IMG/VR virus record: IMGVR_UViG_3300025012_000028
Coordinates: 150,554 to 214,553 of that record
DNA length: 64,000 nucleotides
Strand: one strand, 5' to 3'
A program made the position numbers and the translations under genes. Below, piece after piece: positions 4,900 to 20,219 of the stretch (within the stretch, counting starts at the first letter, position 1; each line of letters starts with the position of its first letter). The notes below the pieces were generated by a model. The model was not told the DNA's origin, did not search any database, and saw only the letters and a list, made by a program, of their open reading frames with translations.

Positions 4900-5328
4900 T
4901 TATTTTCCGGTGTATTTTATTTCATGAACTTTCACACCACAATTCTTGGCACGTTTAACCATATCATTACTTCCCGGTGTACCAGTTTTACTCTTCCTGA
5001 TATCGTTGATGATAATGGCATGAGTCGATTTTTCTGCCATCACTTGGTTTCTATTGAAACCAGCAAGGCAATTATATTCTTTTCCATTGCGAGTTTTGAT
5101 CTTACAGATAGGAACAGTGAGGTCATTCCAATCGGCGGGGTTCTCATCGACTTTGAAATTATTTTCTATTGCCCAACGGAAAGCGATATCATCGACACCT
5201 TCCGGTGCCATTCCATCAACAATACATTCGATAAGATTTCTCTTGGGGAGGATTAACTTGTTGAGGGTTCTGTAAATAAAACCAACATCAGTAATCGACC
5301 TACTACCAGCAATCAACAGGCGAATCAT
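4900..5328 (-). CDS. SLOG-fold protein (YspA/DUF2493-like)
   Basis: IAGSR, GMAPEGVD, ADW, AGFNRNQVM, PGSNDMV. Confidence 0.8.
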   Translation of the reverse strand: MIRLLIAGSRSITDVGFIYRTLNKLILPKRNLIECIVDGMAPEGVDDIAFRWAIENNFKVDENPADWNDLTVPICKIKTRNGKEYNCLAGFNRNQVMAEKSTHAIIINDIRKSKTGTPGSNDMVKRAKNCGVKVHEIKYTGK

Positions 5329-7141: not shown

Positions 7142-8023
7142 ATGTCTAGAAAACTCACAAATGAAATCATCGATGAACGTCTACTAGGAAGAAAAATTAT
7201 CAGAATTGGTGACTATAAAACTGCATTAACCAAAATATCATGGAAATGTTTGAAGGATGGTTATGTTTGGAACGCAACACCACACGATATAAATTCAGGA
7301 TATGGATGTCCTGCTTGTGCCAATAAAATACCAATTACGAATGAAACAATAGACATCAAATTACAAAACAGATCTATTGTCCGAATTGGCGATTGTATTG
7401 GACAGAACAATAAAATTTTATTCTGTTGTCAAATATGTGATTATCAATGGGTCACAACACCGAAAAGTATTTTACATGGAAATGGTTGTCCTGAGTGTTC
7501 GGGTAAAGTACCATTAACAAATGAAAGAATCGATAATAAATTATCAAATAGACCAATAAAAAGAATTGGTAATTGTACCGAGGGCAATAAAATTAATATA
7601 GAATGGCAATGTCTTATAGAAACTTGTGGTTCTATATGGAAAGCTTCGCCGGGTAGTGTATTGAACAATTTCAGAGGATGTCCACATTGTAGGTACAAAA
7701 ATGAAAAACGTATATATGACTATTTAAGAGAACAGTATTCCCAATTAAATATTACTCCTCAATATAGAATACATATAAACAACAAACTTTTTGTGATAGA
7801 TTTCAACCTCAATGATATATTCATTGAATATCATGGCATTCAACATTACGAACCAGTTGAATATTTTGGTGGAAAGAAATCTTTTATCAAACAAATTAAA
7901 CGAGATTACTTACTGAGGGAATATTGTAGTGAAAATAAAATCAAACTTATAGAAATACCTCATTGGTTTACGAACGATGAACAATATGAATTGTTACAAT
8001 TTTCGTTAAAAACTTCGACATGA
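7142..8023 (+). mobile_element. Free-standing putative homing endonuclease: 3 Zn-ribbon repeats plus PD-(D/E)XK/Vsr-like domain
   Basis: Three C..C-W.A.P...GCP.C repeats; IDFNL..IFIEYHGIQHY, RD...YC..NKIKLIEI. Confidence 0.8.
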
Positions 8024-9174
8024 TTCCTAGTAGGCCCATATGAAACCATAGCAATGTTTTTATTCTTGATAAATTCTCTCACATTTTGGGAAATAATTTG
8101 GCCTTCATCAATATATTTTATTGTTTCATCTTCCAATTGATCAACACAAGTCATACAAACTTTGTGGATTATACAAACACCTTTGTTGTTGTTTTCAAAT
8201 AAATCTTTTCTGATAGCTTTTCTAATCAAATCAAGGTTTAAAAAACTAAACCTTAAAGTTCCTTGCCATTGATTGGGAATGTTGGTGGCATCGATGATAT
8301 TGCAATAGGGTTTATCTACCAATTCCATTGGCAATGGTCCGTTACCGTGTCGAGTAGTATAAGTTCGCATAACATAGGTAACTTCAATTTCTTTTATATC
8401 CATTTCAACACTCAATTCTATTATATTATTCAACCCCGTCTTGGATCTTGTGACATACGGAAAGAATTCGTTATTTTCATCAAGAAGTAACCCTTGAGCA
8501 CCTTCGAAAATAACGTTTTTATATCTTTCACTTATATCTTTAGCAGACGATAAAATGATTATTCCTTTAAAGAATTCTAAATCTTTAATATACCGATTGA
8601 TCATATTTTCATTTTCCATCAGTGATTTATAATTATCTGGAATAGTTTGAATTTCCAACTTTTGGATTCGTTTATATGCATATTGTTTGATTTTTTTAAG
8701 TTCTTCATATTCGGAAGTTAAATTAAAAATTAGTCCATTTATGTCGTGTCGTTCGATAGTTTCCGAAATGCCCATTCCACAGGAACCATGACGATTACCG
8801 CCACGCATATCTTCCATCATTTGGTTGAGGATCATGTCATATGGAGTGGTCACTTTACAAGAAGGATCGACATACACAATGGGTTTAACCCCCTTGGAAA
8901 CAAGTTCCTCATACTCCTGTCGGAAAATGATGGGATTGACAATGAAATGTTTGGAAAGGAAAGTGGGCGAACCATTGAAGCTACCGCTTCCAAAATGGTG
9001 GAATACATGGCGAACTCCTTCAGGTGTCACTACGGTATGTCCTGCCTGTGCTCCACCGTTAAAACGTACCACCACGGCTTCCTCGTTGTACTTTGCAGAA
9101 AGGTAATCGACCTGTTTCCCTTTTGCACAATCCCCAAACCCCGAACCTATGACAGCAAATCCTTTCATACTCAA
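7960..9174 (-). CDS. purA: Adenylosuccinate synthetase-like protein (divergent family)
   Basis: GFGDCAKGK, RFNGGAQAGHTV, FEGAQGLLLD, FPYVT.S, Y.TRHG.GP. Confidence 0.85.
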   Translation of the reverse strand: MSMKGFAVIGSGFGDCAKGKQVDYLSAKYNEEAVVVRFNGGAQAGHTVVTPEGVRHVFHHFGSGSFNGSPTFLSKHFIVNPIIFRQEYEELVSKGVKPIVYVDPSCKVTTPYDMILNQMMEDMRGGNRHGSCGMGISETIERHDINGLIFNLTSEYEELKKIKQYAYKRIQKLEIQTIPDNYKSLMENENMINRYIKDLEFFKGIIILSSAKDISERYKNVIFEGAQGLLLDENNEFFPYVTRSKTGLNNIIELSVEMDIKEIEVTYVMRTYTTRHGNGPLPMELVDKPYCNIIDATNIPNQWQGTLRFSFLNLDLIRKAIRKDLFENNNKGVCIIHKVCMTCVDQLEDETIKYIDEGQIISQNVREFIKNKNIAMVSYGPTRNHVEVFNENCNNSYCSSFVNQ

Positions 9175-9413
9175 CCCTCCATTGTTTTTAATAGATTTTC
9201 AATATTCCACGAATGTCTGTGTGAACCCTGTTTTAGTGTAGCGCGGATCATCACCCTCTTTAACGATGATCCTTTCCTAATTTTTGTGGCACGAAACCGC
9301 ATCCACTTCCACAGATAAAAACGAATTATCCCAACTTTAAATGGAGTGCCGATACCTCCAAAATAATCGAATACTCGACCACCACTGCGATGAAGGTAAT
9401 AATCGTATTTCAT
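9171..9413 (-). CDS. Hypothetical protein
   Basis: ORF track, ATGA coupling to purA-like gene. Confidence 0.45.
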   Translation of the reverse strand: MKYDYYLHRSGGRVFDYFGGIGTPFKVGIIRFYLWKWMRFRATKIRKGSSLKRVMIRATLKQGSHRHSWNIENLLKTMEG

Positions 9414-9573
9414 TATTTCAACCTATTCATAAATGCCTGAAGTGCTGTCTTCAAATTAGCAGTTTCAAAAGAAACATCGGGCGCTTCGATTAAGAAAATT
9501 TCTTCTGTGATACTGTTTTTATTTTCTCTTTTATGAACGGCAGTTATACTAACCCTATATGTTTCTTCCATCT

Positions 9574-9900
9574 TTATTCCTCCATTAAAAATTTAGATTT
9601 TTCTAACCATTTGTTAATTTGATGCTCGGTGAACGCTATTGGGAGTTTACCTTTCCTATAATATTTTTTAAGATGATCTGGAACAACCCAACCTTTATTA
9701 TCTTCTCTTGCTGGAACCCAATACTCGGTTCTGTGATCGGGTAATGGTTTACAAGAAAAACCCATAAAATAAACCCTTGGGTGGTACTTCACGGCCCATT
9801 TACAATAGGCATCCACACCACCTTTCTTGTGGTCTATCACACCTATCAGGCGATAGACAACATCACCATAATAATCTGAATGGTGGATTTCTGTTTTCAT
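9574..9900 (-). CDS. Hypothetical protein
   Basis: ORF track; start MKTEIH after GGAGG. Confidence 0.5.
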   Translation of the reverse strand: MKTEIHHSDYYGDVVYRLIGVIDHKKGGVDAYCKWAVKYHPRVYFMGFSCKPLPDHRTEYWVPAREDNKGWVVPDHLKKYYRKGKLPIAFTEHQINKWLEKSKFLMEE

Positions 9901-10104
9901 TTTATTATCCCTCCGCAATTCGTTCAAAGTTCATCATATCAAATTTCATTTTGCGTCTACCCATTCTACCCAGACGTTTCAGATCTTTTTTGGGAGGAGC
10001 ACAACAGGAACATTTCCACCCACCAATCCCAATACAAAGATATTTCTCCCTCATACGTCTGGTGATCAAGATTGGTGATTTCATAATTCCTCCTCAGATA
10101 AATT

Positions 10105-10166: not shown

Positions 10167-11090
10167 TTAGAACGTCACGATACCACCAGCAACGGTTCCA
10201 TTTGCCGCAAGGTCTTTGATCGCCTTGGAAACTACCACACCAGTCGTTCCATCCCACGAAGCAACCACGTCTGCAACATCGGCGCCCTCGGTTGCCTGAA
10301 TGATGGACACGATAACCTCAGACATCTTGCTTGCATCAGCAAGAGGAATTGCGTTCTGACCGAGAATTTTGCTCCACGAATCACGAACCCTGACACCATG
10401 ACTCATCATGTAGTTGCCCTGTTCCACCATCAGATGGAACACATGATACTTCCTCGATACCATCATCAACAGTTCTTCAGCAGAGAAAGCATCTTTTTCG
10501 GGTCGATACCCAAGATATTTCTCAATCAATCCTGCTTTAATGGGAGGAGGTACACATTCATCACCGGCAGTGAAGAGATAACCTTTTTTTCCACGCTTTT
10601 CAAAGCAGTCGATGGAAGTGTGCATTGCTGCGAAGTACCAAGGAAAAGTGTACGATTCCGATGAGTTACCACCGCCCCGACCTTCCAGATAAATCTTTTG
10701 AAGCTGTTCAGCAATGCGAATGTCTGCTTCAAACTGAGTCACAGACAGCGGAGCGACTTCGTACATCTCTGCATCACCGATTCCCATGAACATGATGTGC
10801 GGATCGGAAATTGGTTTGCGGTCATAAATTTCCGTTGCCAGAGTATTACAACCTTCACGGATCATCATACGCGCAAGAGAACCCATTGAACCGGTCTGAT
10901 CGATGCCAACAATCAGTGCCGTACTGTTGGGGTTATCTGCGCTATCCCTCGATTCCCTAACTGTGACACCCTTGGGATCGAGTTCATTTACCAGAGTTTT
11001 TGTTGTAAAAAGTCCGGCATCCGAAACACCTTTAACATTTGTGGAACTATAGGAGTCCCAACTGCTCCTGCTCCATGCACCAGATCCCAT
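10167..11090 (-). CDS. von Willebrand factor A (vWA) domain protein
   Basis: MIDAS DQTGSM, GIGD, EG.GGGN..ESY, AGDE. Confidence 0.85.
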   Translation of the reverse strand: MGSGAWSRSSWDSYSSTNVKGVSDAGLFTTKTLVNELDPKGVTVRESRDSADNPNSTALIVGIDQTGSMGSLARMMIREGCNTLATEIYDRKPISDPHIMFMGIGDAEMYEVAPLSVTQFEADIRIAEQLQKIYLEGRGGGNSSESYTFPWYFAAMHTSIDCFEKRGKKGYLFTAGDECVPPPIKAGLIEKYLGYRPEKDAFSAEELLMMVSRKYHVFHLMVEQGNYMMSHGVRVRDSWSKILGQNAIPLADASKMSEVIVSIIQATEGADVADVVASWDGTTGVVVSKAIKDLAANGTVAGGIVTF

Positions 11091-11745
11091 TTTCTTTCTC
11101 CTTTTTAGTTAATAGTTCATAGTAAACTTCATGAATTTTTGTTGCTACTTTATCAACATCACTCAATTCTCTATTGGAGAAACGCATTACAAACCACCCC
11201 AAAGATAATAAATATTCATCTCTAATTTTATCCAACTCAATATTATGAGATAAATTACCACTCCCATAATGATCAAGTTCAATATTTAATTTTACATCGG
11301 GGAAATAAAAATCCAAAATATAATACTTACGGCCATAATAAATCCGTTTGCTCCATTTTGGATTCATCATTTGAAAGATGCGATTTTGCCACAAAACTTC
11401 TTCATAATACGTTCTGCCATTATGTGTTTTTCGGTGGTCATTTATTTCTTTTAAATTATTGATGGCATGTGTCGAATATTTTTCTTTATTTTCTGGTTTA
11501 GCATTCGATATATCTCTAGCAATATCTCGTTTGATTACCAATTCTGGATCGTTATTGACCCTTGTGATATTTCGAATTGAATATTCAATTTGTTTCTGTG
11601 ATTTATTTCTTAACAATAATCGTTCTTTGGATAATTGTTTAATTAGTGAATTGTTTTTATTCCTCCAAATAGCCGCACATGATGTGCTACAATATTTTCT
11701 ATTTGGAGGAATAGATTTACCACAACCATTTTCACAAAACTTCAT
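11047..11745 (-). mobile_element. Putative homing endonuclease, Vsr/DUF559-like C-terminal domain
   Basis: YILDFYFP..KLNIELD, D..RDEYL...GW.VMRFSN; N-terminal C..GC..YCS..C. Confidence 0.75.
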
Positions 11746-11851: not shown

Positions 11852-12235
11852 TTAGAGTGAGTTAAGATGAATTGCTACAGACGGTAATGAAATGAAACTG
11901 TTACCACCATTATTCTGAACCATCTTTGCTACTTTGGTCATAGCTTTGAATTTATGAGAACCAATTTCAAACCCCAAGAAACAGAAAATAGTTTTTTCAG
12001 GACGTTTGTTGCTATCATCAACAACTTCCGCCACGGAATAGATATTATCTTCTTCCGAAGTGATTACATAAAGGCAATAATCACATTCTTTGCGCTGCTT
12101 AAGTTCTTCCTCGTAAGCAGCGTCATTCCACGTTCCTTCAGGAAGTTGTGGGTTGAAATAATCAATACACAACATCTGAATTAATTCGTCCCGCCATATG
12201 GATTTGCCACACGTCCCACCCAGAAAAACTTTCAT
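11852..12235 (-). CDS. Nucleoside 2-deoxyribosyltransferase-like protein
   Basis: KVFLGGTC..S.WR, YFNP, YSVAE. Confidence 0.75.
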   Translation of the reverse strand: MKVFLGGTCGKSIWRDELIQMLCIDYFNPQLPEGTWNDAAYEEELKQRKECDYCLYVITSEEDNIYSVAEVVDDSNKRPEKTIFCFLGFEIGSHKFKAMTKVAKMVQNNGGNSFISLPSVAIHLNSL

Positions 12236-12335: not shown

Positions 12336-12569
12336 TTAATTGTTTTTTAAACTTCTCACATAGAGCCGCAAACTTCTTGCAGCATTAGACATTGATAAAC
12401 ATCCACCACTAACTTCTTCTACAAAAAGAGTGGAATTAACCACAAACCTTTTACCTCTCCAATTGAATCGGATGCTACTCGGATATAATTTAAGATCGCT
12501 GATAGTATTAGATTCGGGTAACTTGCTGTACACCGTTTCAATAATTTCTGCTAATGTTTTCTCACTCAT
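12336..12569 (-). CDS. Hypothetical protein
   Basis: ORF track. Confidence 0.5.
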   Translation of the reverse strand: MSEKTLAEIIETVYSKLPESNTISDLKLYPSSIRFNWRGKRFVVNSTLFVEEVSGGCLSMSNAARSLRLYVRSLKNN

Positions 12570-13578
12570 ACACATCCTCCCATTTCAAATCAAGATGGAT
12601 AAATTTTCTCTCACCATAACTCTCTTTTAGAATTTTGGTGTGCCAAGTTTCATATTCCTTGAACGGATCATCCCCCGCACCATATTCCAACCAGTTTTGG
12701 AAAGCTTTGGGAGCCTTGGCCTTCTCCAACAGTTTGCGCCCAAGTGCCTTAACAAATTCACCATCGGTGGTGCAGCTTGCCAGCTTGGATGCCCTGACAG
12801 TAGGAGGAACCGAATTATAAAGGTGTGATGGAACAGCAATCATCTTCTCACCGATATTGGTGGTGAACCACCACCCACCTAGAATTGCGACAGAGTGATA
12901 TTCGGGAGAAATGAAAATTGTTTCCAGAGAAATACTGTTATTAACTATACCATTAAATTTGAAATAACACAACAGATTATTTAATCTACTTTGCATCCAC
13001 GCCACGTGTTTGTCCCACGCCACTGGATAACCTTTGGAATTGTAATGATCATATACATCCTTTAATAGAAGTTGATCGGGTGTTTTGCTCACCACGATAA
13101 CGAACCTGCTATCTTTACATTTGAAGTTTTTCTTAATGGTGGGAAGGTATCTGCTGAACTCCTTTTTCATATCTTCGTTTGCATACTTAAAGGATTTCAC
13201 ATTTCGTAAGTAATTCTCATAGAACTTAATATGATCCTTATCCAGAACATATGCTATGACAGTTTTGGAAATGTACATCTCCCCCAATTCGAATTTATGT
13301 TTCTTCCTGAAACCAATTCGATAGGTGGTATTGTGTTCATCGGTGACGTAGACCACAAAAGGAATTTCCCATTTCCCCTGTTCGATCAGTTCAACCGACT
13401 TGGTGTACATGTCCTTAATGTGAACAAAAACATCGTTGGCATTGGATTCTTTATAACGATCAGGATGAAATTTCATGCTGAGAGTTTTGAATTCACTTTT
13501 AGCCACATCAATATCATTGCTGAAAATCTCACAGGGATTGACAATTTTTAATAGTTCGTTGGCTGTGAAATCTTTCAT
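12562..13578 (-). CDS. J-domain (HPD) fused to protein-kinase-like domain, probably a pseudokinase
   Basis: FKTLSMKFHPDR; HVAWMQSRL, IVNNSIS, ILGGWWF where HxD and DFG are expected. Confidence 0.7.
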   Translation of the reverse strand: MKDFTANELLKIVNPCEIFSNDIDVAKSEFKTLSMKFHPDRYKESNANDVFVHIKDMYTKSVELIEQGKWEIPFVVYVTDEHNTTYRIGFRKKHKFELGEMYISKTVIAYVLDKDHIKFYENYLRNVKSFKYANEDMKKEFSRYLPTIKKNFKCKDSRFVIVVSKTPDQLLLKDVYDHYNSKGYPVAWDKHVAWMQSRLNNLLCYFKFNGIVNNSISLETIFISPEYHSVAILGGWWFTTNIGEKMIAVPSHLYNSVPPTVRASKLASCTTDGEFVKALGRKLLEKAKAPKAFQNWLEYGAGDDPFKEYETWHTKILKESYGERKFIHLDLKWEDVYE

Positions 13579-13797
13579 TTAACTTGTCCTATATTGGATT
13601 TGGTTTTCTTCAAACACTTTAATCGCAGCTTCGAAATAATATTCCTGATCGAAGAGAAATATGAATTCTGAATATCCTATGTCCACCACATTCCTGATTA
13701 ATGGTTCGATCTTCCAGAAAACTTCAGCAGTCTCTTCCCACGAATCGTTCACATAAACAAGCTGAATGATCCATGTTTTAAAAACAGGCCATTCCAT
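13579..13797 (-). CDS. Hypothetical protein
   Basis: ORF track. Confidence 0.5.
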   Translation of the reverse strand: MEWPVFKTWIIQLVYVNDSWEETAEVFWKIEPLIRNVVDIGYSEFIFLFDQEYYFEAAIKVFEENQIQYRTS

Positions 13798-14258
13798 TAG
13801 GCAAGCCTCTTGGATTTGATTAAATCAATGAGTTTATATTCTGGAGACTCGGGTGGAAAATAGTATTGGGAATGAATATTACTATTTTCATCTATTTCTG
13901 AAATATTAAAGTAGTACCCATCATCAAATTTAACTGCATTAAAATATCTTTCTGGAACAATCACCCCACAACAAGTAATAATCCCACCAAGAGAATCTTC
14001 ATCTTCGTGGAACTTATCAAAGGGTAGATCCATAGAAGGGCATATTTCCCAAAGAAGATTAAATATATCCTCAATATCTTTTCGATTGCCCCCATTGAGG
14101 ATGATGATAGTTTTATCATGTCCTGCCCAACGATTATATCTTTTGCTTCTCGCACATTTCTGAGATAGATCACCCACAAGATGTGCCGTTTGTAGGCCAT
14201 GTTGAAGCGGCGAAAGATAAAAAATTACAAATGAATAAAGCCTGAGTTCTTCTTCCAT
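13797..14258 (-). CDS. Peptidyl-tRNA hydrolase 2-like protein
   Basis: LS..Q.GLQTAH, W...KTIIIL, F.E..LGG..T..G. Confidence 0.65.
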   Translation of the reverse strand: MEEELRLYSFVIFYLSPLQHGLQTAHLVGDLSQKCARSKRYNRWAGHDKTIIILNGGNRKDIEDIFNLLWEICPSMDLPFDKFHEDEDSLGGIITCCGVIVPERYFNAVKFDDGYYFNISEIDENSNIHSQYYFPPESPEYKLIDLIKSKRLA

Positions 14259-17216: not shown

Positions 17217-20200
17217 TTATACTAGTGTTAATGTGGTACTCCGCACTGTGCCGTCCGAACCCTTGACTTTTACCGTCAAGGTAGTGTTGTCGGTCAACTC
17301 GAAAGTCATTTCCCCGTTTACTGTTGGTGTTGCCGACGTGAGGGGAAAAGCTGAAACGTAATCCGTTGTAGGGGTGTAGGCTGCTGTACCAAGGTTTGAT
17401 GATTTCACCAGCCCGTTTATTATAAACGTCGAATAAACCCCACCGTCATTAGTGAGTAGATAACCATCGCCGGTCCCTTGATCTTGTTCATACTGGTTAA
17501 TGATAGTTGCCATCATGATGATGCCATCATGAACTGAGACCAAGGAGCCAGAGCCGAACACTGTGGACCCACTTAGACCCGCCCCCGGTGTGGCTTCTCG
17601 TGCCTGAAAGATTGTGCCGACTGCATTGGACGTAGAAACATACCCGACTTGAAGCGGCGTAAAATCAGCATCGGTGTTATTTAGTATCTTATACCACCCT
17701 CCGACCTCAATATTCGTCAAGTTCGTATAAGAAATCGGCGTGCTGGCGAAAATGGCCCTCGATTGCCGTCCAATTCCCTGTTTTGATCTCAGATCGTCAC
17801 CATTGACCCTGAGATTAAGCATATAATAGTTACCAAGAACCACACCGTAACGAACTGCTGGTGTGCCGGAAACATACCCCCCATTGCCATCTACTGTCAT
17901 ATCGAGAGTGCTGGCATACATTCCATAACTAGAGTTGCCCAACCGGAATCCGTGTGAACCGTTCTCTTGTGCTTCTATTGTACCTTGGTGGTTCGCTCCG
18001 GTGAGAATTACCGCACCTTCAAAGTCATTAGCAGCAGTACCGAAATATGGAACAATATCGACAGATGAACCTGTGGTGGAGATGTTGAGCCGTCTAGAAA
18101 GAAAAACTTTGATGTCGGAATACTGAATATTCTTGTTTGCGAATCTCGCCGCCAAACCCCAGTGCATTGCACCGCCAATCTGGATTTTCGACAATTTGCT
18201 ATCGTTGGCCTTGCCGAGGTCCAGCCCCGAACCATCGACCCGCTGAACAATCAGCCCCTCAATTACTAGGTTGCTAGCGTACCCTTCATCGTTACTAACA
18301 ACCACGCCGTGACCACCACTCAACAGATGCGCTCCAGTGCCGGAATCGCGGATATCGTCGGCTGCGAACTCCTCGCGTAGGCCGTACACGCCTCCAGCGG
18401 CCCCCGATCTGTGTCCCGCGAAGAATTCAACTCTGGTGTCGGAAAGCGTCCGGGAATAAGTGTTGTCCACACCTTGGGCAATGTATATGCCGCTCCCCAC
18501 CGAGAACAACCCCCCACCAGCCTGACCATCGACCGTAAGCCCATGGATAGACCCGTACGCGCCGGTCCAGCGAATGACATAAAGCAAGGCGTCAGCGGCG
18601 TCATCTCCGGAAGGTTTGAATCGTATCTTACTGGACGCTGAACCATCCCCGATGAGATGCACTTTTGATTTCAACTCAACATCACGCCACCACGTAACCC
18701 CGCGCGGGACAAAAACGGAGCCGCCGTTTAGCGCGGCTTGCACATCAATCGCGGCTTGCGCGGCTGCCGAATCGTCCGAGCCGTCATATTTCGCGCCGAA
18801 CCATTTAACGTTGACCGCCCCGGTGTAATCCCTCAGCCATGCAGCCGAACCGTCGCCGCCTGTCGGCACAATGACGGTGCCGTTGTTGTCGGTGTAGGTG
18901 CCCGGTGAAGCACCTGAAACCCAACGGAAATGACCTCCCCCACCATCTCCTGCCGAAGTGTGATTCTCAAGGTATATAGATGGCACAGTGCCGTTCGTGA
19001 TGCCTCGTAACGCCGTGAGGTTTGTCACGACCAAGCCATCCATAGCATCTTGCACCGCCTTGACCGCTGCCGAGTTCGCCGCCGTGGTTGTGGAGTTAGA
19101 AGTAGTGGAGGATGAAAGCTCCGATGTTGATACAATATCCCCGAACTTTAAACCACCCACAACTTTCGATGGGTCGAAATTGTGTGGACCCACAAGTACC
19201 GGTTCTAGTGCTGCCGCCACATCAACTTCAGTAGTAGGAGGATATGTCTCTGAGTTAATTTTTCGGAAGGATAAGATTGTAGTTCGTGAAGCATTACCAT
19301 CTATCAAAAGATGTTGTGCATCGGGCGCTGCCGCAGCACCTATGGTGTCCTGTCTTGACATTCCCGAAATAATACTGTTACCTTCCCCACCTGAAATACG
19401 GTAGCTCCTGCCGGGAAACTCAGCAGACCTGTTAATGTTGGCTTCCACACCGGACCCACTCAGAGTTACGGCGTTAGCACCGTCCAACCAAAAACCTAGT
19501 CCGGCCTGTTCGATATATGTGCCGTTTATATTGACTGTAGTTGGACCATATAGATAGACCCCAAGGATAATATCTCGTACACTAGAACTAATAAAAGTAT
19601 GACCGTCACCACCATCTATAAATATTCCGGCATAACCACCTTGAAAAATTTTGACCTGATCATAGGTACAAAATGCACCAGTACCCACATAAAGTGATAT
19701 ATCATTGAGGTAACGTAGATGAACATTACGTACAGTCAAATTAGTAAGTATTTCTTGGGAGCTAACATGAATATCAATACCTTTATTCCCCGTGCCGACC
19801 CATTGACCCGGACCATCTATCCCAAAATTGGATAGATATACCCAATCTGTATCGACACCTAACAATGCTGGACCATCAAAGTCAGCCTTGATAAGTCCTG
19901 AGTCCAATGGTGACACACCGAAAATACGATGTCCGTCGCGCAGTGTAAGGGGTGCTGATATTTTACACCATGCCGGAAGTAGTATACTAGTTTCTGAGTC
20001 AAGTACAGCCTGTATTGCAGCTCTATCATCCGTTATACCGTCACATACAGCGCCTCTTGTTTTAACATTGACCGCATGTGTGTCTATCTGATCCTGCACC
20101 GCCTTGGTTAAAGAGTTAATTGAAGTTTTAACCGAATTACCATTTTGAACAATAGGTACTTTTTCTAAACCAGATAGTGGTATCGTAGCTTCATTAAATT

Positions 20201-20219
20201 CAGATATTTTCTTTGCCAT
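17217..20219 (-). CDS. Tailspike with two tandem pectate-lyase-like beta-helix modules
   Basis: KKIS head; VNVKTRGAVCDG.TDDRAAIQA and VNVKWFGAK.DG.DDSAAAQAA; tail-fibre repeat linker. Confidence 0.85.
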   Translation of the reverse strand: MAKKISEFNEATIPLSGLEKVPIVQNGNSVKTSINSLTKAVQDQIDTHAVNVKTRGAVCDGITDDRAAIQAVLDSETSILLPAWCKISAPLTLRDGHRIFGVSPLDSGLIKADFDGPALLGVDTDWVYLSNFGIDGPGQWVGTGNKGIDIHVSSQEILTNLTVRNVHLRYLNDISLYVGTGAFCTYDQVKIFQGGYAGIFIDGGDGHTFISSSVRDIILGVYLYGPTTVNINGTYIEQAGLGFWLDGANAVTLSGSGVEANINRSAEFPGRSYRISGGEGNSIISGMSRQDTIGAAAAPDAQHLLIDGNASRTTILSFRKINSETYPPTTEVDVAAALEPVLVGPHNFDPSKVVGGLKFGDIVSTSELSSSTTSNSTTTAANSAAVKAVQDAMDGLVVTNLTALRGITNGTVPSIYLENHTSAGDGGGGHFRWVSGASPGTYTDNNGTVIVPTGGDGSAAWLRDYTGAVNVKWFGAKYDGSDDSAAAQAAIDVQAALNGGSVFVPRGVTWWRDVELKSKVHLIGDGSASSKIRFKPSGDDAADALLYVIRWTGAYGSIHGLTVDGQAGGGLFSVGSGIYIAQGVDNTYSRTLSDTRVEFFAGHRSGAAGGVYGLREEFAADDIRDSGTGAHLLSGGHGVVVSNDEGYASNLVIEGLIVQRVDGSGLDLGKANDSKLSKIQIGGAMHWGLAARFANKNIQYSDIKVFLSRRLNISTTGSSVDIVPYFGTAANDFEGAVILTGANHQGTIEAQENGSHGFRLGNSSYGMYASTLDMTVDGNGGYVSGTPAVRYGVVLGNYYMLNLRVNGDDLRSKQGIGRQSRAIFASTPISYTNLTNIEVGGWYKILNNTDADFTPLQVGYVSTSNAVGTIFQAREATPGAGLSGSTVFGSGSLVSVHDGIIMMATIINQYEQDQGTGDGYLLTNDGGVYSTFIINGLVKSSNLGTAAYTPTTDYVSAFPLTSATPTVNGEMTFELTDNTTLTVKVKGSDGTVRSTTLTLV

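Follow-up and report, generated by a model that had tools for sequence, protein, structure and literature searches.

What does a jumbo phage do with a gene for a PurA-like enzyme whose substrate loops match neither adenylosuccinate synthetase nor its phage relative PurZ? The gene lies on the minus strand of a 64,000-nucleotide stretch (the window; positions 150,554 to 214,553 of IMG/VR record IMGVR_UViG_3300025012_000028). A sequence-only reading had proposed that the P-loop keeps the Asp that PurZ replaces with Ser, that the IMP-binding IGTT motif reads HGSC, that the aspartate-binding TTGRxRR loop is replaced, and that the nucleotide or amine substrate may therefore differ from IMP and aspartate, possibly giving a new modified nucleotide. 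We find that the gene encodes a divergent relative of the AMP-making enzyme PurA that scores far below both the PurA and the PurZ family cut-offs, and that it is the enzyme part of a widespread three-gene module that we found described nowhere. In bacteria the module often sits beside NAD/ADP-ribose-type regulators and, in some lineages, salvage genes, and thus it more likely serves nucleotide-cofactor metabolism than virion-DNA modification.

To verify the observation, we first examined the open reading frame itself. The ORF at 7960-9174 exists, but its start is most likely the ATG at 9168, because a GGAGG lies 7 nt upstream, the upstream ORF stops at 9171 and the database copy has 402 aa; the TTG at 9174 adds only two codons. 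The product matches PF00709 with 163 bits, although only over profile positions 1-279 of 416. An AlphaFold model (pLDDT 89, pTM 0.90) predicts the full adenylosuccinate-synthetase fold and matches known structures of that enzyme over the full length (TMq 0.70-0.76), despite about 20% identity. By contrast, the protein reaches 136 bits against the 402-bit equivalog cut-off of NF002223, 125 against 396 for TIGR00184, and 54 against 300 for the NCBIfam PurZ model NF038379.

The altered motifs are present as described, and the observation is confirmed. GDCAKGK (residues 14-20; 9115-9135), HGSCGMG (residues 129-135; 8770-8790) and TNIPNQWQGTLRF (residues 297-309; 8248-8286) align with G12-K18 (GDEGKGK), I126-R131 (IGTTGR) and the T300-R306 aspartate loop of E. 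coli PurA, respectively. In E. coli numbering, the catalytic Asp13, Lys16, His41 and Gln224 are kept (D15, K18, H46 and Q227 in the phage protein) and are 98-100% conserved in the subfamily to which the protein belongs; the His41 equivalent lies in GGAQAGHT (9034-9057). IMP is held in PurA by N38, T128/T129, R143′ and the V273 region. Here N38 is Gln (Q43; 98% of the subfamily), the HGSCGMG segment carries I126H, T128S, T129C and R131M (S131/C132 at the threonine positions), V273 is His (H276, in TRHGNGP at 8335-8355; 100% of module sequences) and the R143 column is variable. Across the subfamily, Cys129 is found in 77% with Val in the rest, R131 is replaced by hydrophobic residues and S240 by Arg. 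The TTGRRRR aspartate loop is remodelled in TNIPNQWQGTLRF, with no basic residue at the R303 and R305 columns and a conserved aromatic-Gln pair, although the alignment of this loop is uncertain. At the donor site, TCVDQ (8137-8151) takes the place of TKLDV; the guanine-specifying Asp333 equivalent (D345; 97%) and the S414 equivalent (S378) are kept whereas K331 is Cys (91%), a combination from which GTP use is predicted.

The HGSC motif and the TN..QG..LRF loop are not peculiar to this phage. The H-G-S/T-C/V-G pattern occurs in 140 of 145 subfamily sequences, TRHG in 140 of 145 and the TN...QG pattern in 133 of 145, and the phage protein carries all of the subfamily motifs (GGAQAGH, HGSCG, TRHG, TN..QG.LRF and TCxDQ). 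Only the P-loop changes E14C and G15A are unusual within the subfamily, where these positions are E in 96% and G in 94%; the activity of this particular protein could thus be altered or weakened. The subfamily is found in at least 425 bacterial species across many phyla, in IMG/VR phages and in cultured phages of Mycobacterium (Bxz1-like), Rhizobium (TM30 types) and Vibrio (phiKT1024/Va1 types), where it is annotated as ‘adenylosuccinate synthetase’ or, wrongly, as the PurZ-type ‘2-aminooxy adenylosuccinate synthetase’. In all five of the five bacterial genomes tested, the gene is a second paralogue beside a full-scoring purA. In a quick IQ-TREE analysis (a more careful search did not finish, and one ‘canonical’ row, L173, was a spurious ORF to be ignored), canonical PurA and PurZ together split from all module sequences with an SH-aLRT of 99. 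A megablast search of the region against GenBank phages gave no match.

Two partner genes, which the sequence-only reading missed, lie 1 kb and 3.4 kb away in the same window and on the same strand. The first (10167-11090) encodes a 307-aa vWA-fold protein with an invariant MIDAS-like D-x-T-G-S (10887-10901), an invariant N-terminal MG..W and a conserved C-terminal tail; it corresponds to phrog_2971, has thousands of homologues and is covered by no Pfam model. The second (12562-13578) encodes a 338-aa J-domain protein (HPD at 13459-13467) fused to a kinase-like domain that lacks the catalytic Asp, that is, a pseudokinase. The J-domain and vWA proteins are 35-37% and 54-57% identical, respectively, to those of Clostridium drakei and Candidatus Competibacter. 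Between the vWA and PurA-like genes are three small co-oriented ORFs of 80, 52 and 117 aa (9171-9927), the last of which stops 2 nt before the PurA-like ATG; they have no assigned function and are absent from the compact bacterial versions of the module.

When loci were probed with the vWA gene, a PurA-like gene lay just downstream on the same strand in 73 of 73 bacterial and 75 of 76 viral loci with room for one, 148 of 149 in total. The J-domain/kinase-like gene lay upstream in 56 of 74 and 50 of 70 loci (about 74%), with HPD in 107 of 113. Iterating the J/kinase profile found no new members, and the roughly 25% of loci without it may carry diverged or different upstream genes; in three loci (L184, L070 and L076) an NrtR-like gene lies directly upstream of the vWA gene. 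In GenBank phages the vWA and PurA-like genes occur in the same Mycobacterium, Rhizobium and Vibrio phages (200+1, 10 and 6 records). Apparent vWA-PurA-like fusions (ORFs of 694-726 aa) are out-of-frame artefacts in GC-rich genomes. A predicted co-fold of the enzyme with the vWA protein scored 0.02, which counts neither for nor against binding. A PADLOC scan of the enzyme, the vWA and J proteins, an NDT-like protein and a phrog_3668 protein returned no hit, and the module is therefore not a catalogued defence system. Pfam gave weak hints to GAP1-N2 and TCAD9 (E 0.035 and 0.12). Literature searches on PurA homologues and PurA-like phage enzymes, on their association with vWA, kinase or J-domain proteins, and on NrtR with adenylosuccinate or von Willebrand proteins described no such module, and the Aravind-lab paper on conflict systems does not mention it.

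The link to NAD/ADP-ribose rests on gene neighbourhood only. In 44 of 80 bacterial loci, across many phyla, an NrtR-like (ADP-ribose-responsive type) regulator lies within 6 kb and mostly directly adjacent, although about half of these loci come from one family, the Competibacteraceae, and NrtR-family regulators also control non-NAD pathways. Clostridium arrays run NrtR, PRPS-like, isochorismatase, NAMPT-like, PARG, J, vWA, PurA-like, all co-directional; the PRPS-like and NAMPT-like genes are of the same Pfam families as the pair in NARP1 (Adps + Namat), one of the phage NAD+ reconstitution pathways. Some phage loci carry NMNAT-Nudix and NAMPT genes next to the module, as in NARP2 (Nampt + Nmnat/Nudix). 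The module proteins nevertheless have no sequence relation to any NARP enzyme, and NARP3 (PnuC + NadR) is unrelated. The NAD/ADP-ribose association is weak in phages (8 of 80 viral loci), and no PF14572, PF04095, PF01467 or PF00293 hit, and hence no NAMPT, NMNAT, Nudix or PRPS-like gene, was found in the 214.5-kb record of this phage, which is about 90% complete. Other phage neighbours point elsewhere, to RNA-repair-type genes (R2K ATP-grasp, HAD_SAK_2, Rv2179c-like exonuclease, ligase) and to a ComF-like PRTase plus HAD.

Our preferred explanation, which remains tentative, is that the gene encodes the catalytic subunit of a module of J-domain pseudokinase, vWA/MIDAS protein and PurA-like enzyme. 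What the analysis establishes is the complete adenylosuccinate-synthetase fold, as modelled, the retention of the residues that carry out PurA chemistry (the Asp13 base, Lys16, the His41 acid and Gln224) and of the guanine-specifying Asp333, and the replacement of the residues that hold the 5′-phosphate and ribose of IMP, and of those that hold aspartate, by a different, equally conserved set (Gln38, His126, Cys129, Arg240, His273, an aromatic-Gln loop and Cys331). All activity is inferred: the enzyme would still use GTP to phosphorylate an oxygen of a bound heterocycle or ribosyl compound and then let a nitrogen nucleophile displace the phosphate, its substrate pair would not be IMP plus aspartate, it would work together with the vWA protein, and the J-domain pseudokinase probably recruits host DnaK/Hsp70. 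From gene neighbourhood only, and as a guess, the substrate is most likely an NAD+/ADP-ribose-derived or related purine nucleotide. The interpretation in the sequence-only reading is partly supported: a PurA-type enzyme that is not PurZ, with a different substrate pair as a fair inference, but not a new modified nucleotide for virion DNA.

Among the alternatives, the one that survives best, although we consider it unlikely, is that the module acts on RNA or on a protein rather than on a free nucleotide, for example by re-amination or tagging of a damaged base in tRNA, or by GTP-dependent modification or remodelling of a target protein held by the vWA MIDAS site and handed to DnaK by the J domain. 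Two of the three components are protein-interaction modules, the residues that bind the nucleotide 5′-phosphate are lost, and phage loci often carry RNA-repair-type genes nearby; NADAR and TROVE genes are near the module in phiKT1024, PARG in Clostridium, and an ART gene in one further locus (L182). However, those neighbours recur only within related phage groups, no nucleic-acid-binding domain is seen in any of the three proteins, and there is no direct evidence of complex formation.

Less likely still is a non-catalytic GTP-binding switch or a metal-handling GTPase, in which the new His/Cys/His/Cys set (H126, C129, H273 and C331), conserved in or near the old substrate pocket, would form a metal site, by analogy with vWA-partnered metal-insertion systems. 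The MIDAS-bearing partner and the atypical P-loop of the phage protein are compatible with this view, and in MoxR-vWA pairs and the CobS/CobT and BchI/BchD chelatases a nucleotide-hydrolysing enzyme is likewise genetically coupled to a vWA protein. Yet the NTPase in those systems is an AAA+ ATPase rather than a PurA-type enzyme, no AAA+/MoxR partner, metalloenzyme target or chelatase subunit recurs near the module, and Asp13/His41 and Gln224, needed only for chemistry on a bound substrate, stay at 98-100%.

An ordinary adenylosuccinate synthetase (EC 6.3.4.4; E. coli 1ADE/1CG0 type), boosting AMP synthesis from IMP and aspartate during infection as an auxiliary metabolic gene, is improbable. 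The PF00709 match, the predicted fold, the retained catalytic and guanine-specifying residues and the database annotation favour it, but the sub-cut-off scores, the replacement of the N38, T129, R131, V273, R303 and R305 equivalents, conservatively so across the subfamily, the full-scoring purA kept by bacterial carriers, a coupling to a vWA protein that has no counterpart in purine synthesis, and the absence of purB from the phage argue against it. Least likely is a PurZ-like role in making a non-canonical (deoxy)nucleotide for virion DNA: although this is a divergent PurA-family enzyme in a large phage, with altered substrate loops, pooled with PurZ in phrog_1211 and with NDT-like and SLOG genes nearby in the window, it has Asp where three PurZ/PurZ0 references (SH-Ab 15497, VP2 and Gisselle), 147 of 147 phage PurZ (PMC12884076) and phiVC8 (S14) have Ser, it has the long PurA-type architecture and lower structural similarity to PurZ (6FM1, 7ODX, 7VF6; TMq 0.51-0.63), the only DatZ-type hit in the phage (PF12917, 19.7 bits) is below cut-off, no MazG-type gene (PF03819) was found, the module is chromosomal in at least 425 bacterial species and often beside NrtR-like regulators, and no DNA polymerase, glycosylase, dNTPase or other DNA-modification partner recurs as a neighbour. 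PF04447 also gave no hit, but the control of that search did not register, and it counts neither for nor against this role. In PurZ/PurZ0 generally, Ser or Gly takes the place of Asp13.

If our reading holds, the module would maintain or repair a nucleotide-cofactor pool during infection, possibly as a counter-defence, and would not alter virion DNA. A bolder version, unlikely but not excluded, is that the vWA/PurA-like pair with its J-domain pseudokinase is a new GTP-driven enzyme system acting on NAD+ breakdown products or ADP-ribose adducts, a further route of NAD+/ADP-ribose recycling or repair that bacteria would control through NrtR-like regulators and that large phages, including Bxz1-like mycobacteriophages, would carry to counter NAD+-depleting immunity. 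The link to NrtR-like regulators and NAD+ reconstitution genes makes this a concrete hypothesis, testable within the current field of NAD+-centred phage-host conflict and in cultured, tractable phages. At the least, the result corrects a systematic misannotation. PurA-family enzymes are known for two reactions only, AMP synthesis and the PurZ step that creates Z-DNA; the subfamily described here is a third, large and sharply conserved branch, which keeps the catalytic machinery but has a rebuilt substrate pocket, and which is genetically locked to two partners that have no role in purine synthesis.

The region studied forms the last 64 kb of a 214,553-bp IMG/VR phage record that is about 90% complete, has 36% GC and carries nearly all of its genes on the minus strand. 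Because the region encodes baseplate-wedge and tail-fibre genes, a DnaB-like helicase and a UvsX-like recombinase, this is a large myovirus-like phage; it has no close DNA relative among GenBank phages. At positions 18001-20000, inside the 1000-aa tail-fibre/EPS-depolymerase-like gene (17217-20219), GC content jumps to 0.50 against a background of about 0.36, which may mark a horizontally acquired receptor-binding part.

The sequence-only reading had described a PurA-like enzyme at 7960-9174 with three altered motifs, and that observation holds: the ORF (minus strand) is real and all three motifs are present at verified coordinates. The likely start is the ATG at 9168, as a GGAGG lies 7 nt upstream, the preceding ORF stops at 9171 and the database copy of the protein has 402 aa. 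Aligned to E. coli PurA, GDCAKGK falls on G12-K18, HGSC falls on I126-T129, and the TN..QG.LRF stretch replaces the T300-R306 aspartate loop. PurZ and PurZ0 references, by contrast, have Ser at the Asp13 position, in agreement with the Ser reported in all 147 phage PurZ sequences (PMC12884076) and with S14 of phiVC8 PurZ.

To establish what the protein is, we compared it with curated families and with known structures. Pfam detects PF00709 (163 bits), but only over the N-terminal two thirds, and PHROGs places the protein in phrog_1211, whose label is the PurZ-type one. In NCBIfam it falls far below both cut-offs, scoring 136 bits against 402 for the PurA equivalogs and 54 bits against 300 for PurZ. 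An AlphaFold model built on 30 homologues is confident (pLDDT 89.3, pTM 0.90) and matches bacterial and eukaryotic adenylosuccinate synthetases over the whole length (TMq 0.70-0.76, about 20% identity), but matches PurZ, PurZ0 and the short archaeal type less well (TMq 0.51-0.63). Thus, by the model, the C-terminal part that Pfam failed to align is still the PurA C-terminal subdomain, and the sequence alignment agrees, with TCVDQ aligning to TKLDV and SYGPTR to STGPDR. RefSeq and PHROG-derived annotation nevertheless labels this PurA-like gene '2-aminooxy adenylosuccinate synthetase', the PurZ label, in phage records such as NC_070966.1, NC_054719.1 and PP083314.1, although it carries Asp13 and is not PurZ; this is a systematic misannotation in Bxz1-like, Rhizobium and Vibrio phages.

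The altered loops are a family signature. A word-based search returned more than 5,000 PF00709 proteins, of which the best 120 (42-57% identical, about 400 aa) all carry GGAQAGHT, HGSCG, TRHG.GP, TN.PN..QG.LRF and (T/S)C.DQ. In 145 sequences collected independently through the partner gene described below, several E. coli positions are kept (D13 98%, K16 98%, H41 98%, E221 100%, Q224 100%, T239 100% and D333 97%), whereas others are replaced by a conserved alternative: N38 to Q (98%), I126 to H (94%), T128 to S (88%), T129 to C (77%) or V, R131 to V/L/I, S240 to R (82%), V273 to H (100%) and K331 to C (91%). The R303 and R305 columns carry no basic residue, and an aromatic-Gln-Gly triplet is nearly invariant there, although the alignment of this loop is uncertain. 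In E. coli PurA, N38, T129 and R143' hold the 5'-phosphate of IMP, V273 contacts the ribose, and T300, T301, R303 and R305 hold aspartate. Thus, the chemistry-bearing residues and the GTP-base determinant survive, while both substrate sites are rebuilt. The P-loop of this phage protein (E14C, G15A) is the one feature that is unusual within the subfamily; however, Thr14 occurs in PurZ, Ala15 in PurZ0 and Ala14 in the mycobacteriophage copy, so these changes need not abolish activity. A quick maximum-likelihood tree, which did not come from a completed careful search and in which one spurious row should be ignored, splits canonical PurA plus PurZ from all module-linked sequences with an SH-aLRT of 99.

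Gene context provided the decisive finding. In Clostridium drakei and Candidatus Competibacter, the closest named homologues are preceded by two genes, one encoding a protein of about 340 aa with a weak DnaJ hit and the other a protein of about 305 aa with no Pfam hit. Both have homologues in the phage region, at 12562-13578 (minus strand; 35-37% identical) and at 10167-11090 (minus strand; 54-57% identical), the latter being more conserved than the enzyme itself. The same order holds in Mycobacterium phage NoodleTree (gp257 'serine/threonine kinase', gp258, gp260), and the pair formed by the second partner, a predicted vWA-fold protein (see below), and the PurA-like protein is also present in Rhizobium phage TM30 and Vibrio phage phiKT1024. 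To avoid circularity, we probed the collections with the 305-aa partner rather than with the enzyme. It is encoded by 425 species-representative bacterial genomes, a lower bound from a two-pattern scan, along with one archaeal MAG among the kept loci, and by 134 IMG/VR contigs. A complete J/vWA/PurA-like module sits on a 168-kb contig (CAZUBH010000002.1, locus L057) binned as a Thermoplasmatales archaeon MAG, which could reflect transfer to archaea or a binning error. Among the 160 loci kept, a PurA-like gene lies immediately downstream on the same strand in 73 of 73 bacterial and 75 of 76 viral loci that have room, and a profile of the first gene finds it upstream in 56 of 74 and 50 of 70 loci, respectively. 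In GenBank phages the 305-aa partner occurs in 218 records, including 200 from Mycobacterium plus 1 from Mycolicibacterium, 10 from Rhizobium and 6 from Vibrio, the same phage groups that hold the PurA-like gene. Five bacterial genomes with the module each hold exactly two PF00709 genes, a full-scoring purA (542-636 bits) and the module copy (127-178 bits).

The 307-aa partner of this phage has thousands of 'hypothetical' homologues and no Pfam family. Its structural model (pLDDT 81.5, pTM 0.85) hits only vWA domains, namely integrin beta-I, the pilus adhesin SpaC, Ku80, TFIIH p44 and ArnB, with E about 1e-5. Invariant features include a MIDAS-like D64-x-T66-G-S68, a GGGN..ES loop, the N-terminus MG..W (M-G-x-x-x-W/F in the alignment) and a disordered C-terminal tail ending in hydrophobic-basic-Phe/Leu. 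A free N-terminal Gly after Met removal is therefore possible, and such conserved termini suggest docking or even substrate roles. The 338-aa protein has a J domain, with HPD in 107 of 113 family members, followed by a kinase-like domain. Although the mycobacteriophage homologue passes the Pfam Pkinase cut-off, the catalytic-loop Asp is replaced (consensus H-N-x-I) and the DFG Asp is mostly Gly, so it is a pseudokinase.

In this phage the module is loosened. Three small ORFs sit between the vWA and enzyme genes, and two further genes sit between the J and vWA genes: a DUF559 (Vsr-like) endonuclease-type gene at 11047-11745 (minus strand), which overlaps the vWA start by 44 bp, and a nucleoside 2-deoxyribosyltransferase (NDT)-like gene (PF15891) at 11852-12235 (minus strand). 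An HNH-type homing endonuclease gene at 7142-8023 (plus strand; phrog_559, DUF4379 treble-clef repeats plus a CapR domain) converges on the enzyme gene and overlaps its 3' end by 64 bp, and a similar DUF4379/CapR gene lies near the module in a related phage contig (L182). Together with GIY-YIG genes inside the module in other viral loci (for example, locus L155), the DUF559 gene suggests that the phage versions of the module are a hotspot for mobile endonuclease insertion. A YspA-type SLOG protein (PF10686) is encoded 2.6 kb downstream at 4900-5328 (minus strand); both the NDT-like and SLOG families handle nucleotide N-glycosidic ligands, but they recur with the module in only 2 and 1 of the 160 loci, respectively. 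Just upstream of the J-domain gene, at 13797-14258 (minus strand), lies a gene for a 153-aa protein of phrog_3668 ('hydrolase') that has no Pfam, NCBIfam or PADLOC hit and was not found next to the module in the other loci.

Clustering of all neighbours of the 160 loci gave one recurrent fourth gene, encoding a Nudix plus NrtR-winged-helix regulator, whose best NCBIfam match is 'ADPR responsive transcriptional repressor' at 160 bits, below the cut-off. By BLAST, this NrtR-like gene lies within 6 kb in 44 of 80 bacterial loci, mostly directly adjacent and either divergent or co-directional. The 35 bacterial loci of the neighbour cluster span Competibacteraceae, Geobacter-type and Desulfobacterota MAGs, several Clostridia, Massilia, Pyrinomonadaceae and Alphaproteobacteria, and a further set adds Roseomonas/Teichococcus and Plasticicumulans. 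Divergent promoters in Competibacteraceae loci (L027, L029, L032, L033, L036, L040, L041, L056 and L058) carry conserved 18-21-bp palindromes, TTATTTG-N7-CAAATAA and TGTTATT-N4-AATAACA, in the intergenic region between the NrtR-like gene and the module; these are candidate operator sites for the regulator. In four Clostridium loci (three with PARG) the array reads NrtR, PRPS-like (PF14572), isochorismatase, NAMPT-like, microbial PARG, J, vWA, PurA-like, all on one strand, and PF14572 plus NAMPT-type Pfams are the annotation of the NARP1 pair Adps/Namat. Four viral loci carry NMNAT-Nudix and six carry NAMPT next to the module, and phiKT1024 has a NADAR gene about 2 kb upstream of the vWA gene. 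Against a link to NAD+ metabolism, the present phage has no NAMPT, NMNAT, Nudix, PRPS-like or PurB gene, the viral association is weak, and other phage neighbours are RNA-repair-type genes or a ComF-like PRTase with HAD.

Taken together, the analysis establishes a distinct, widespread PurA-family branch that is neither PurA nor PurZ by defining residues and curated scores, with conserved catalytic and GTP-base residues and a rebuilt substrate pocket. The branch is genetically locked to a vWA/MIDAS protein and usually to a J-domain pseudokinase, and in bacteria it is an extra paralogue, frequently beside NrtR-like regulators and sometimes inside NAD+ salvage/ADP-ribose clusters. We found no description of this module in PADLOC or in the open-access literature searched, although prior description elsewhere cannot be excluded. 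The interpretation offered by the sequence-only reading is borne out only in part: that the protein is not PurZ is upheld, and a substrate pair other than IMP and aspartate remains our inference, but the suggestion of a new modified nucleotide, in the sense of a modified base created for virion DNA, is not supported. What the enzyme does is likewise inferred rather than demonstrated: we infer that it performs GTP-dependent, PurA-type activation and substitution on a different substrate pair, that it works with its partners, and that the substrate belongs to NAD+/ADP-ribose-related nucleotide metabolism. In phages, by the same inference, it would support infection, possibly against NAD+-depleting immunity.
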